A DNA stretch of 56,309 nt, filler included, from Platydemus manokwari (lineage: Eukaryota): NCBI GenBank assembly GCA_037951405.1. It is 5 parts of 5 records of this genome, joined end to end, with 100 filler letters (N's around TTAATTAATTAA, not from the genome) between each part and the next. Parts side by side here need not be neighbours in the genome. Positions count along the whole stretch, not along the records: positions 9,371 to 23,583 come from JBBMOY011502526.1; 4 more parts are not named here. The stretch is one strand, 5' to 3'. The stretch's first letter is position 1. Each line of letters starts with the position of its first letter. Made by a program: the position numbers and the translations under genes. Of the stretch, positions 12,985-20,981 are shown piece after piece. Under the pieces are notes generated by a model that did no database searches, was not told the origin of the DNA, and was given only the letters and a program-made list of their open reading frames with translations.

Positions 12985-14064
12985 ATGAAAAATTCCAGTT
13001 CATATTTTTTAATTGATATAGTTATGAATTGTCAATTCAGCAATCAAAGCTTCTCCGCTGATGTCATTTATAAATATATAACATTGGTTTTAACACCACT
13101 TAGTATTCTATCCAATTGTTTTGCTTTCATAATTTTTAAACAGTCCATTTGGAATAATTCTGTCATGTCAAAAATTTTGCAAACTCTTTCTCTATTTGAG
13201 ATGCTTTTCAATTTGAATGTCCTCATAGAAGCTTCAATGAGACATCAAATAGAAGAACAGCATTCAAGCTTAATGCAATTAATGATATTTATTTATATAA
13301 TAACTGCAACAAAAGTTTTGATGATAGTTTTCCTAATTGCACGCAACTGGACAGTCGTAATTCTAGCTGCACATCGATATGAAAGTGTTTGTAGACCGGT
13401 TGGAAGTTGCCGATATATTCGAGCGGATAATATAAACATTATATTTGCGTTTATTATAATTTTATCCATTGTTATTGCAGTACCGAGAATGATGGAAACA
13501 AAAATTGAAATATGTAAGCCGACATTTTCTGTTAAGAGATTTGTCCCATTATTCATTGCCAACAAATGGTACCTGTATCTCCATACCGGATTGTTGTTGT
13601 TTTTCGTTCAAAACGGTGGACCAGTTATATTGGTATGTTTGTTAAGCAGTTTTGTGCTACGAGTCATTAAGAAAATGAAAAAGATTCGAAAATCAAATTT
13701 GAATTTGAATGATAAAAGTGGAACTTCCCAGCCAAGTGGAGATAAACTCATAGTCATTCTTTGTGCAGCGTTTTTCGTTTTAGAAACGCCAGCATTTTTT
13801 AGTAAAATACTTCACCATTATTTCGATTATCAAGGTTATCATATGCTCAATATGCATATAGGCCACATAGCGAATACTTTGATATACTTGGATTCTATTA
13901 TTAACATAGCAGTATATATAATTTCCAATCCGACTTTTAGAGTATCGTCGAAAACTCTACTATCTAAATCAATATGCAGAACGAAATTAATGAGTGGATT
14001 CAATCCAATCACTATGATAACAACAATTCCACAAACCAATCTTGGAGAAACGGTGGAACTGTAG
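12985..14064 (+). CDS. Intronless class A (rhodopsin-like) orphan GPCR, peptide- or chemoreceptor-like
   Basis: 359-aa ORF with seven hydrophobic segments and an N-terminal NQS sequon. TM1 has SN, TM3 reads RNWTVVILAAHRYESVCRP (DRY position is HRY), TM6 has ETP, TM7 reads DSIINIAVY, and helix 8 reads NPTFR. The start could be the second Met at 13024. Confidence 0.92.
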   Translation: MKNSSSYFLIDIVMNCQFSNQSFSADVIYKYITLVLTPLSILSNCFAFIIFKQSIWNNSVMSKILQTLSLFEMLFNLNVLIEASMRHQIEEQHSSLMQLMIFIYIITATKVLMIVFLIARNWTVVILAAHRYESVCRPVGSCRYIRADNINIIFAFIIILSIVIAVPRMMETKIEICKPTFSVKRFVPLFIANKWYLYLHTGLLLFFVQNGGPVILVCLLSSFVLRVIKKMKKIRKSNLNLNDKSGTSQPSGDKLIVILCAAFFVLETPAFFSKILHHYFDYQGYHMLNMHIGHIANTLIYLDSIINIAVYIISNPTFRVSSKTLLSKSICRTKLMSGFNPITMITTIPQTNLGETVEL

Positions 14065-16440: not shown

Positions 16441-19385
16441 AAATCCATCCATTTTCGTCTTACGAACTGAAAATTGATTTCAAATTAATTGGATTTCTAT
16501 GTATTGCTTTATAACATGACTGAAAAAATTATATATCTTCTAATAATACAATTTGTTTATCTTTCGTCAGCCAATAAAAACTTATTCTAATTTGATGAAT
16601 TTGAAGATTTCAATCAAAAGAAAAAATTTGAAATATCTGCTGTGTAAACAACATTTCTTCTCCAAATATGAATGCTCAAGATTTGTTATTATTTTCATTT
16701 CTTTTTGGGATTTTTTTATTTGATTATCGATTTTATATATGACATCCAATGAATACTGGCATGAAACATTTTTTTTCACTTAACCATTTAAATAGTCCTA
16801 TAAGTAATCCATTATGTAGAAAGCAGGTTTTCATAGATCCGGTTCAATAAATGTAATCAAATTTGCAAAAGCGATATTAAAAATCGAAAACTTTTAATTT
16901 TCTTGTTAAACGATATAAATTTCCAGTAGATGATAAATGAGTTTATGATTATGGTAATATTAAGTAGCCAGCGATATTGTTACGATATAAATCATTCGAA
17001 GATAATTCAGTGAAACAATAATGGATGAAATTCTAAAATCTAAAGATCGTAGAAAGCCAATCCAAGAATAAACGACATTCACAACATAAAAACTAGTAGT
17101 TATTTCAAGAGTTGACTCTTTTTATGAAATTTCCTTACATATTTAATTGAAAGGTTATTTTCAATCTTTAATTTAATTGATGCATTTTGTTAAGTTTTGG
17201 TTTCTCGAGGTTGTAAAAATTTAAAATCGTATTTTGGTAATTCGAAGACCTCTGATCGTCTATTATATTTGTCTGTTTAATCGTTCTCAAAGTTATTCCA
17301 ATGATTCAGATCAGGATTTTTGGTCCGCTCTATATCACAGTTCACAGTATTAAAAACAATGATATTAACAGATTTTAACACTGTGCTTAAAACTATAATT
17401 ATATTATTTTCGATTATATTATAAATGATTGTAATTTCAGTAATTAATTAAAACAGATATTTCATTAATAATCATATTAATAAAAATTTAAATTCAAGGT
17501 AAAAGTGATATAAAAATTAAAATTTAATACTAAAATTATAATTTCAAATTAAATATTTTAAAATCCTAATAATTTCATTTCACCACTTAAAGTTTGTAAA
17601 TTTTTTTTTCAAAAATATTGCAATGAGGTTTCAGTCAATAGTTACCTAACTTTGTGAACCTTCACTAGGTTATGTTGTCAGAATATTATTATTAGGATAT
17701 TATTAGCTTAAAAATTGTAATTTAATGATTATAATTTCGAAATATTTTAATTTAAAAATTTTATTTTAAGTAAAAAGAATTCGTTAAACAAAAAAATATT
17801 TCTTTACTTTTATTGTTTATTCTTGTAGTGAATAATAATTATTTGACTTGTTACAAACGCATAGTTTGTTATCGGAATCTATTTACATATTTTGTTTCAG
17901 TGGAAGCATAGAAATTTTTGTGCGGAAAATGTGATACAAGCATGACACAAAAAATTACACAAACATCTCGACTATAAATACCGATATAAAGATGGCCACT
18001 TGCCAGTTGGAAGCCAAATTTTTGGCTACGTGTTGAGACATTGTATTTAATTTATAAGTCATACTGAGTAGTACGCGTGTAGTTGGAAGTTTAGTTTTTA
18101 ACGTAAATTTGTGACAGTTAGAAATAAAGTTTACAACCTTTGATTTTTGGAGTCAATAATAATTTGGTTATTCAGAATCAGGCAGCCCAACAATATCTAT
18201 GTTCGATATATCTTTATTATTTATTGTTATTACTGTATATTTTTATCTTATCCACATTTTTTGTATAATCGAATTCTCATTTTATTCTATTTATTTTGGC
18301 GTATTGAACATTCTTAAATCTTCTCGGTAGATATAACCGAATTACTCAATATCTTCGACATTTTAAGAATTTATTACAATTAACTTACCTAGAATCGTAT
18401 CGTTAGCCACTAATATTTCATTAAAGTTATGTTAACAAATAATAAATAATAATTTTTTATCAATACTTAAATATATTGTCAAGCGATAGATTTTTACAAT
18501 TCAAATTTATGAATATTTATTATGAATATTATGAATATTATGAAAATTATGAATAACCAATCACAATAATTTTAAAATTATCTCAAGTTTAATGAGTAAA
18601 AATTGATGAACGCTCATTTATCAATAGCTGCAATAGAAAAACGCTTGTATAGAACTCATTTCTCATTAATTTATATTATATTTCTCATTAATAGATCTGC
18701 AATGTCCACATAAATTATTGTTGAAACATTGTGATTGAGATATCAGCGATCTGACTTGAGATGGAATAGTTATAATATAATAATATTAATAAAATTATAA
18801 TATTAATGACCAAATACAATACCGCAATCAACAGTTGACTGATAAAAAGATATTGCCAATGTTAAATATAATAAAGTACTTGAAATTGGTTCTATTATAA
18901 AAATTTCCGATTAATAAAAATAATTCCTGAATGAAATCCACGCAGTAAATAAACAAAAAATTAATCAAATATAATCTGAGGATTACTGAATATTTACGAG
19001 TAAATTATATAATAAAAATTATTTTCATTATTTGTTTTGTAGACAGAAAAGAAATGCAAATTGAATTAAAAATGACACAAAGAATTCGATGTTAGTTACA
19101 TTTACATGTGATAATAGTGAGAAGAACAGTGTTCTCGTGTTATTATTCGATAAGATCGTTGCTACGATTTCGAGTTTGGATGTAATGAAAAAAATAATTT
19201 TTTAATGAATAAATGTGACTTGAGCTTCAATGTTTCGAATTGCAAAATGTACAATAGTGTTATTGATTGAGCAATTGATGTTGTAATTGGTGAAAATGTT
19301 ATTTTATTTAACACAGAATAAATGTGCTAAAATTTATTAAGTGGTCAAAATATAAATGAATAAAGTATTCTTTGTGGAAAAATTA

Positions 19386-19443
19386 GTCCTGTTTCGGCCC
19401 TCCATAGCACTCATCAGTATCCCGGTTCAGAGATATATAGGAC
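19386..19443 (-). ncRNA. Type III hammerhead ribozyme motif with intact catalytic core
   Basis: Minus strand reads GUCCUA-UA-UAUCUC-UGAACC-GGGAUA-CUGAUGA-GUGCU-AUGGA-GGGCC-GAAA-CAGGAC. CUGAUGA and GAAA are intact, stem I is 6 bp, and stem III is GUCCU/AGGAC with one A.C mismatch. Stem II is imperfect. Predicted cut is between 19436 and 19435. Confidence 0.85.
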
Positions 19444-19515
19444 TTGTTAATCACTCGGAGCCTTCAAGAGCAATAGCTGCAATGATGGTGATGGTGTTTT
19501 TAAGATACGGATAGT

Positions 19516-19565
19516 GTCCTATTTCGACTTTCCATGGGCCTCATCGGACCAGAGACAGATATGAC
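19516..19565 (-). ncRNA. Type III hammerhead ribozyme motif with an 8-nt deletion
   Basis: Minus strand reads GUCAUA-UC-UGUCUC-UGGUCC-[8 nt missing]-GAUGA-GGC-CCAUGGAAA-GUC-GAAA-UAGGAC. The 3' strand of stem I and the CU of the core are deleted relative to the other copies. Confidence 0.7.
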
Positions 19566-20981
19566 TAAAGGATATCTTGAAAATAGCTATCCGTTTATAT
19601 ACCAATTTAGAGACCAATTCATCAAATAATCAAAATCAAGGATTAGTATATTGTGATTAAAGATCTCGACTGGATTTTAAAGAGCTGACAGACAATAAAT
19701 TTTGCCCCTTATTGCCGCAAGAAATATGAAAGAACAATTCATTATGGATTGCAGATTGAACTACGACTATAATGGACGATAGTAGCTCAATAAGATAATT
19801 AATTAAAAATAATAATTATATTATAATTAATTATAATTAACCACAATATTATATAAAGTACATATTATCAACTAGCATAAATATTTGAAAAATAATAGAG
19901 AAAATTGCACAAATTTTTTGTTAAAATTCAATTCATAGTAAGTATGGAAATATTTTATTTTACGTTATATTTTCATGTTTTACGGGTGCTGGAGAGCGTA
20001 AACATTAGACCATCCCTTTTAAACAGAACTCGCGCTTTAAATTATTGTTTTATTCAAATAAATATTGTTATTTTATTTTGTTTTAATTCAGAACCCATTG
20101 ATCTATAAGCCTCATGTATAACAAATTAGATAATATCTGAACTTATTTGATTAACCATTGTCGAAATTGTTAATTGTTTATCTAATCAATTTCATTATCG
20201 GTGTCCCATTAATACATATCTATCGATCATAATTCATTGACTAATGTAAATATCTTTGCTTTTCGATCTCTGGTTACTGATAGTGTACCGAAAATTGTTT
20301 TGAATATATTTAACTGATCCTAAATGAAATGACAGCAGAAGTCACTTTGTAATATTTTAATGAATTGATCAGTCGACTTGGAATTTACTTAGTTCTGAAA
20401 CTAAATGTTAATAATCAACATATTTACTCAAATTAACCAATAATCTCCTTTATTAACAAATTAACAGTTTGTAGTTAGAGCGATATTTACTTTTATGGTA
20501 CTAGTTTACATGAGGAATATCTTCTCTCATTATTAACAAATGACAAACTGGAATTTATGTTTCAATTGAATTAACAATTAAATTTACGATCGGGATTGTG
20601 CCTCTATCGCTTCAACTCAGTTGTGCCAATTGCTTTTGACTCTTTGCATTAAGGAATTATCAGAAAGCGAATCTATGAGATTAATTAATAAGCAGAACTT
20701 AGTTATTATCTTTTATCCATATTTGCTTTTATGTCTAAGCTAAATCTATTATCTATCTTATCCATTATCTTTATGAGATTTCTGCTTAAATTAGCTATCA
20801 TTATCGACGGTTTTCTAAGAGCCAATCAACCGTGTGTTTATAAATGATTTTAATTTTTGTCTTTGATTTCTAAAATTTTATTTAAAGCATTTTATTATCA
20901 TCAACAAAGTGTGAATGGCTACATTCTCAATATAATATATTATGTCATATTGATCAAACTCGATTCCTTGACTATATAGAC

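Follow-up and report, generated by a model that had tools for sequence, protein, structure and literature searches.

Introduction

The hammerhead ribozymes (HHRs) of retrozymes are at present thought to be cleanly divided between plants, which have long terminal repeat (LTR) retrozymes with type III ribozymes, and animals, which have tandem, non-LTR elements with type I ribozymes that are linked to Penelope-like elements (PMC7229834, PMC7761336, 10.64898/2026.07.22.740005). We report here a repeat family with type III HHR motifs from a flatworm, which was recognised in a 56,309-nt stretch of Platydemus manokwari DNA (GCA_037951405.1). This whole stretch is called the window below, and all coordinates count along it. 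A preliminary description of the window had drawn the same line between mostly type I ribozymes in animal repeats and type III ribozymes in plant LTRs, and the three sources cited above agree with it.

In plant LTR retrozymes, a type III HHR lies within the LTR, insertions are flanked by 4-bp target duplications and solo LTRs are abundant (PMC4918200). In NbRZ1, the LTR promoter is located upstream of the HHR, which removes the 5' leader (PMC12029980). Retrozyme RNAs are highly self-paired, with more than 70% of the monomer in pairs (PMC4918200). The retrozymes of animals are tandem and LTR-less, carry type I HHRs and are tied to Penelope-like elements (PMC7229834, 10.64898/2026.07.22.740005). 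Type III hammerheads have been reported from animal genomes only as atypical forms with long helices, found in dipterans including Drosophila pseudoobscura, in a termite, in a toad and in hepatitis delta virus (HDV)-like agents or circles, and a helix I of 6 bp with a 6-nt loop is typical of HHRs from plant retrozymes and subviral agents (PMC7936874). One paper contains a remark on unpublished insect elements and raises the possibility of horizontal transfer from "bacteria or insects" (PMC7761336). For flatworms, we found nothing on hammerheads in the open-access literature beyond the type I ribozyme of Sm-alpha (PMC2770079). In open-access text, plant retrozymes have so far been the only elements described with both a type III HHR inside an LTR and target duplications of 4 bp.

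The window contains two type III HHR motifs within an LTR-like repeat unit, which is flanked by a 4-bp duplication and belongs to a family with many decayed copies in the genome. Our preferred reading, which we hold at about an even chance of being correct, is that the window carries a dead solo LTR of an old, apparently extinct LTR-retrozyme-like family of a flatworm, and the cassette of two ribozymes in it is puzzling.

Results

Hammerhead Motifs in the Window

Two same-sense type III HHR motifs, HH1 and HH2 (Table 1), lie on the minus strand of the window where the preliminary description had placed them, and the sequence confirms both the pair and its type III topology. Each motif is arranged in the order of stem III, U-H cleavage site, closed stem I, CUGAUGA, stem II, GAAA and stem III'. 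HH2 keeps its catalytic core in the window, together with a UA cleavage site and a closed stem I of 6 bp with a 6-nt loop; two of the four pairs of stem II are left, and six of the seven pairs of stem III (one mismatch). HH1 does not keep the core: its 8-nt loss relative to most copies removes the 3' strand of stem I together with the first two bases of the core, and one mismatch is also found in its stem III. In neither case is the minimum-free-energy fold a hammerhead. Both ribozymes of the window are confirmed as real type III hammerheads in a decayed state, as had been described.

The cut sites proposed earlier are also correct, as is the predicted distance of 122 nt between them; elsewhere in the family it is 125 nt, lengthened to 130 nt in one subfamily by an insert of 5 nt. 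The core pattern CTGATGAG-N8-16-CGAAA has one match in the window and none in 100 shuffles, and window HH2 scores 72.1 bits with the family covariance model R1 described below. No similarity was found between the 72-nt spacer and the sequence 5' of HH1 or 3' of HH2.

Losses of 5-8 nt at about the same site of HH1, in the 3' strand of stem I, were observed in the window copy (L001) and in copies L009, L011, L012 and L024. The gap is identical in L001 and L009 and differs in L011, L012 and L024; the losses either mark a subfamily or reflect a site prone to deletion between short GA repeats.

Table 1. Features of the hammerhead-bearing repeat unit in the window.
Feature	Position	Strand	Basis or remark
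Target-site duplication AATT, upstream side as read on the minus strand	20124..20127	.	Sequence
Solo LTR-like repeat unit, 789 bp, starts TGTTAT, ends TTAATA	19335..20123	-	Homology among copies
TATA-like box TATATAAAC; its start is 36 nt 5' of HH1	19593..19601	-	Same place in nearly all copies
HH1, inactive type III hammerhead remnant	19516..19565	-	8 nt lost; predicted cut 19558/19557
Spacer between HH1 and HH2, 72 nt here	19444..19515	-	Sequence comparison
HH2, type III hammerhead remnant	19386..19443	-	Core intact; predicted cut 19436/19435
Target-site duplication AATT, downstream side	19331..19334	.	Sequence

Rfam Scores and Class Assignment

The Rfam check suggested in the preliminary description was run. 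Within the hammerhead clan, window HH2 matched the type III model RF00008 best, yet with only 19.0 bits (E 6.8), below the gathering cut-off of 48.5 bits of this model. HH1 of copy L017 gave a partial match of 20.6 bits, and apart from this one the other better copies were not reported by RF00008 at E up to 10 in 50 kb. With about 19-21 bits where 48.5 bits are required, such ribozymes escape routine annotation by the Rfam threshold. Since even better copies score at this level, Rfam was dropped as arbiter and a family-specific covariance model was used instead.

The core CUGANGA...GAAA, the U-H dinucleotide and the G10.1-C11.1 pair are present in many copies of the family, and the core and cleavage site are retained in 16 HH1 and 14 HH2 sequences of 30 aligned copies. 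With helix I capped by a 6-nt loop and the open end at helix III, the motif is not a type I hammerhead. Judged from sequence by these defining structural features, the family is of type III.

Copies of the Family in the Genome

The searched genome comprises 911 Mb in about 2 million contigs. A 191-nt region gave 397 candidates, and all 40 that were scored matched with 78-83% identity. The covariance model R1, which was built from 51 natural HH1 and HH2 sequences, matched all 150 scored candidates with 56-89 bits. The 32-nt 3' half of the ribozyme, allowing up to three mismatches, had 252 matches in the genome (13 exact) and none for the reversed control. At least 250 HHR motifs of the family are present in the genome, and because of the matches obtained in these DNA, covariance-model and pattern searches, chance is excluded at the family level. 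The earlier proposal of a multicopy, non-coding mobile family is upheld by this count. In viral and metagenome contigs, exact-pattern scans for the ribozyme 3' half found no match, and the family sequence was found printed in no paper in open-access text.

Unbroken versions of each ribozyme exist (HH1 in three and HH2 in four of the 30 aligned copies), so the family does contain the intact core and paired stems whose absence would have spoken against the preliminary description. For L017 HH1, L009 HH2 and L013 HH2, which are natural and unbroken, the minimum-free-energy structure is the type III three-way junction, with a helix III of 7 bp, a helix I of 6 bp with a 6-nt loop and a helix II of 4-5 bp. 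The loop of helix II has 5-7 nt.

Across the 51 sequences, 89% of helix cells are paired, compared with 35-46% for slid partners. Nine of 58 positions distinguish HH1 from HH2, and all nine concern the cleavage-site H (C or A), loop 1, loop 2 or stem I, with zero differences in the core, helix II or helix III. At pair 10-25 of stem I, HH1 has G-C and HH2 has A-U (A-U in 29 sequences and G-C in 16), and two further stem I pairs alternate between U-G and U-A. Because all nine differences fall on the cleavage-site H, on loops or on stem I sites where pairing is preserved, the comparison points to past selection on both ribozymes after they had diverged. Mean pairwise identity among copies is 0.84-0.85 in the HHR segments, 0.80 in the spacer, 0.76 in the upstream part and 0.71 in the tail, a gap to which alignment quality in the AT-rich parts could contribute. 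Since the copies are about 20% divergent from one another, the family is old and probably extinct.

These data also bear on the view that the motifs are chance look-alikes within a repeat and were never catalytic, for which the RF00008 scores of only about 19-21 bits may be quoted. We regard it as extremely improbable, since it must account for the invariant core bases, the three helices and a cleavage-site rule that is satisfied twice per unit, as well as for HH1-HH2 differences that are all compatible with the structure and a core pattern with zero matches in shuffles.

In the family alignment, the G before GAAA in CCGAAA is A in about a quarter of HH2 copies, which is above the rate of change at most positions; this may be CpG-type decay or a mere transition hot spot.

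Three units (L063, L069 and L071) have a single chimeric ribozyme and have lost the 125 nt between HH1 and HH2, with junctions that fall at three different points within the ribozymes. These single-ribozyme units are secondary deletions and fit recombination between HH1 and HH2. Ribozyme-mediated excision was rejected as their source, because the junctions differ and are not at cleavage sites.

The LTR-Like Mobile Unit

Homology among copies reaches about 560 nt upstream and about 55 nt downstream of the HHR pair and then stops abruptly, and the flanks of unit copies are unique. The unit so delimited is about 790-840 bp long (about 840 bp in fuller copies) and has TG..CA termini with a 5-nt inverted repeat (TGTTA...TAACA), most copies ending in TTAACA. 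Perfect 4-bp target duplications were found in 10 of 34 candidate end pairs, compared with a mean of 0.58 and a maximum of 4 in 2000 shuffles of the partners. Ends matching at three or more of the four bases were found in 18 of these pairs, compared with 3.4 for shuffled partners, and none of the 34 pairs matches at 5 bp. From 5' to 3', the unit consists of an AT-rich part of about 550 bp, which is U3-like, a TATA-like box, two hammerheads with cuts about 125 nt apart and a tail of about 55 nt ending in CA. The units have two ribozymes, 125-130 nt apart, and single-ribozyme units are later deletions. The TATA-like box could act as a promoter element, and transcription might then start a few bases before HH1.

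Because of the TG..CA ends, the inverted repeat, the 4-bp duplications and the unique flanks, we interpret the unit as a solo LTR whose insertion would have been mediated by an integrase; the family is known here from solo units only. No internal direct repeats that would make mini-LTRs were found within the unit, no tRNA-like parts such as those of Sm-alpha were detected by ARAGORN in 17 loci, and no second ribozyme of opposite polarity was seen in Rfam scans of copies. The preliminary description had taken the HH-spacer-HH block for the retrozyme-like mobile unit. This part of it has to be replaced, since the mobile unit is the whole segment of about 0.8 kb with its TG..CA ends and 4-bp target duplications.

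The same holds for the 122-130-nt RNA between the cut sites, which had been proposed as the circular intermediate and mobile unit of a tandem, non-LTR-type retrozyme with type III ribozymes. A same-sense ribozyme pair at a fixed spacing of 125-130 nt is indeed found in most copies, and hammerhead cleavage would give ligatable ends by established chemistry. We nevertheless consider this proposal very unlikely, because no locus carries more than two ribozymes and no further copy of the spacer follows HH2, because the boundaries of the repeat lie well outside the pair and the 4-bp duplications are found there, and because a 125-nt circle is unable to encode the 0.8-kb unit that was copied. Nor is the monomer RNA structured beyond shuffles: seven inter-cleavage RNAs (122-125 nt) had folding z values of -0.01 to +1.56, which is a soft test since the copies are decayed. 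A 125-nt circle may still have been set free as a by-product, but the sequence copied into the genome is a different one.

In another explanation, a small, formerly independent ribozyme-bearing element was captured as a dimer in an ancestral LTR, where it forms the HH-spacer-HH block and has since been a passive passenger without a role. One unit plus an extra ribozyme is how the insertion of a dimeric small retrozyme would look, and the spacer does not resemble the LTR sequence around the pair. All sampled HHRs of the family are, however, within the LTR or a truncated part of it, and no free 125-nt repeats or arrays were seen among them. The 125-nt RNA is not unusually self-paired, as the above z values show, and conservation within the unit is highest in the HHR segments. 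We therefore find capture of a dimer quite unlikely.

Search for a Full-Length Element

An apparent internal region was seen at L065, L070 and L077 (extended in L083-L086) and was rejected, because it proved to be a 5'-truncated unit fragment within a duplicated region of at least 2.7 kb. This region has protein-kinase exons on the other strand and is most likely a duplicated host region, not the interior of an element. Inspection of open reading frames (ORFs) in flanks without matching duplications gave nothing. In one of the loci concerned, L086 (G000:C1117552), we observed on the minus strand an ORF fragment resembling a Monjiviricetes fusion glycoprotein (8467-8766; PF24664, E 3.5e-11), a reverse-transcriptase fragment (6931-7299; RVT_1, E 2.7e-10) and a kinase exon (4222-4554), with the truncated unit copy nearby.

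The following points weigh against our reading of the window as a solo LTR of a retrozyme-like family. Full-length elements were searched for without success: among about 80 loci, none has two LTRs around a core with a primer-binding site (PBS) and a polypurine tract (PPT), although the fragmented assembly limits this test, and in no case are two units kilobases apart on one contig. An all-against-all comparison of flanks (about 60 downstream and 24 upstream) revealed nothing in common, and a pattern search for a PBS-like TGG after the 3' end of the unit gave only unique flanks. With scores below the RF00008 cut-off, the family is not a member by Rfam's own rule. None of the 30 aligned copies has both ribozymes intact, and present-day activity is therefore unlikely; the indexed runs contain no RNA data for this organism, and the family sequence was found in no RNA run. 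The TATA-like box is weak evidence since the DNA is about 75% A+T, and the presence of two ribozymes per LTR instead of one is without a demonstrated reason.

A further explanation is that an autonomous LTR retrotransposon used the ribozymes to process the 5' end of its RNA. They would trim a capped leader or set the RNA end, like the HDV-like ribozymes in R2 and other long interspersed nuclear elements, without a circular RNA stage or a non-autonomous life style. The HHR pair follows about 36 nt after the TATA-like box, which would put HH1 at the very 5' end of a transcript initiated in the LTR; 5'-terminal ribozymes of retrotransposons are known (summarised in PMC7936874), and the LTR-type ends and 4-bp duplications of the family suit such an element. 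Against this, no coding internal region is linked to the LTRs, one ribozyme would suffice for 5' trimming, and a cut in the downstream LTR would remove the repeated end that the linear RNA of an LTR element needs for strand transfer. We consider this explanation unlikely.

Other Hammerheads and Features

Different type III hammerheads were noticed during the work. One, in L031 (1501-1557, minus strand; G000:C1153215:4691-4747), has stems unrelated to the family and 44.6 bits with RF00008, which is just below the cut-off; the genome has a single copy of it, located in AT-rich non-coding DNA. Another, in L032 (796-850, minus strand; G000:C1699800), is type III hammerhead-like with a CUGACGA core and 43.6 bits, and it is on a short contig. 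Its surroundings look by eye far more GC-rich than the AT-rich loci of the genome, and the contig could come from another organism in the sample. Five type I hammerheads (L088-L092; G000:C380834, C127192, C756161, C1100308 and C51764) exceed the Rfam cut-off with 34.6-47.2 bits on very short contigs, and therefore type I and type III hammerheads coexist in the genome. In L088, no tandem repeat was found within its 711 nt.

A long perfect hairpin in L022 (1377-1459, plus strand) scores 38 bits against the plant MIR319 model, whose cut-off is 54, and most likely stems from an inverted repeat in another element, not from a microRNA. In the window itself, an intronless ORF of 359 amino acids at 12985-14064 on the plus strand encodes a rhodopsin-family receptor (7tm_1, E 2.4e-10). 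Its named homologs are all orphan receptors of flatworms (Schistosoma, Echinococcus, Hymenolepis and others) with 32-41% identity, and two unnamed proteins are 73-76% identical to it. The receptor thus assigns the host to Platyhelminthes, and its low identity to the parasitic groups suggests a free-living species.

Discussion

The plant LTR retrozyme is a closer analogy to the flatworm family than the tandem non-LTR retrozyme. Common to both are a type III hammerhead, located in the LTR of the plant elements and in the LTR-like unit of the flatworm, TG..CA-type ends, 4-bp duplications, a non-coding sequence and many solo LTRs, and the putative promoter region of the flatworm unit is located upstream of the ribozyme within the LTR, as in NbRZ1. 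Differences are also evident. The host is an animal, and the LTR is AT-rich and about 0.8 kb long, compared with more than 55% GC and about 0.35 kb in plants. It has two ribozymes 125 nt apart, whereas plant LTRs have one and the cuts are 600-1000 nt apart. Furthermore, no paired-LTR copy, PBS or PPT was found for the flatworm family, and its RF00008 scores are far under the threshold.

With metazoan non-LTR retrozymes, Sm-alpha and newt satellite 2 (PMC7229834), the family shares an animal host, same-sense ribozyme pairs about 100-400 nt apart and low GC. The ribozymes of metazoan non-LTR retrozymes are, however, of type I and located in head-to-tail arrays of 150-450-bp monomers, whereas the flatworm ribozymes are of type III and occur two per unit. 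Those retrozymes have no LTR features and long or no target duplications, in contrast to the LTR-like unit with its 4-bp duplications, and their monomer RNA is highly self-paired, whereas the flatworm 125-nt RNA is unstructured. The hammerheads of Penelope-like elements are minimal type I ribozymes in pseudo-LTRs, which act as dimers, and are thus distinct from the flatworm type III ribozymes with a stable helix III of 7 bp. The atypical type III hammerheads of animals (PMC7936874) have the same topology as the flatworm ribozymes, but they have extended helices I and II and a pseudoknot, and no transposon link has been described for their genomic copies; in its helix I, the flatworm ribozyme matches the plant retrozyme and subviral form instead. 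Among Platyhelminthes, the ta-TRIM elements of taeniid cestodes are comparable in that they are presented as small non-autonomous LTR elements, and the title and abstract of their description mention no ribozyme (PMC4558846).

If the family propagated in the manner of plant LTR retrozymes, the RNA between the ribozyme of the upstream LTR and that of the downstream LTR would have been circularised after self-cleavage of a transcript started near the TATA-like box. A reverse transcriptase supplied in trans would then have copied the circularised RNA, and an integrase would have inserted the copy and created the 4-bp target duplications. Solo units would have arisen by LTR-LTR recombination, or directly as short complementary DNAs.

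A wider proposal, which we put forward tentatively and regard as rather doubtful at present, is that LTR retrozymes are not confined to plants. The flatworm family would then be an LTR-type element with type III ribozymes and a double-ribozyme cassette per LTR, which spread via self-cleaved and possibly circular RNA by borrowing a Ty3/gypsy-like integrase, and which originated by convergence or by horizontal transfer.

The practical weight of the finding is limited, since all sampled copies are decayed and are without a full-length element. Nevertheless, a flatworm family with canonical type III ribozymes, LTR ends and 4-bp duplications blurs the present split between plants and animals. Because the Rfam threshold misses such ribozymes, animal genomes may contain more of the family than has been counted. 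The finding also bears on the origin of the type III ribozymes in plant retrozymes and in viroid-like RNAs.
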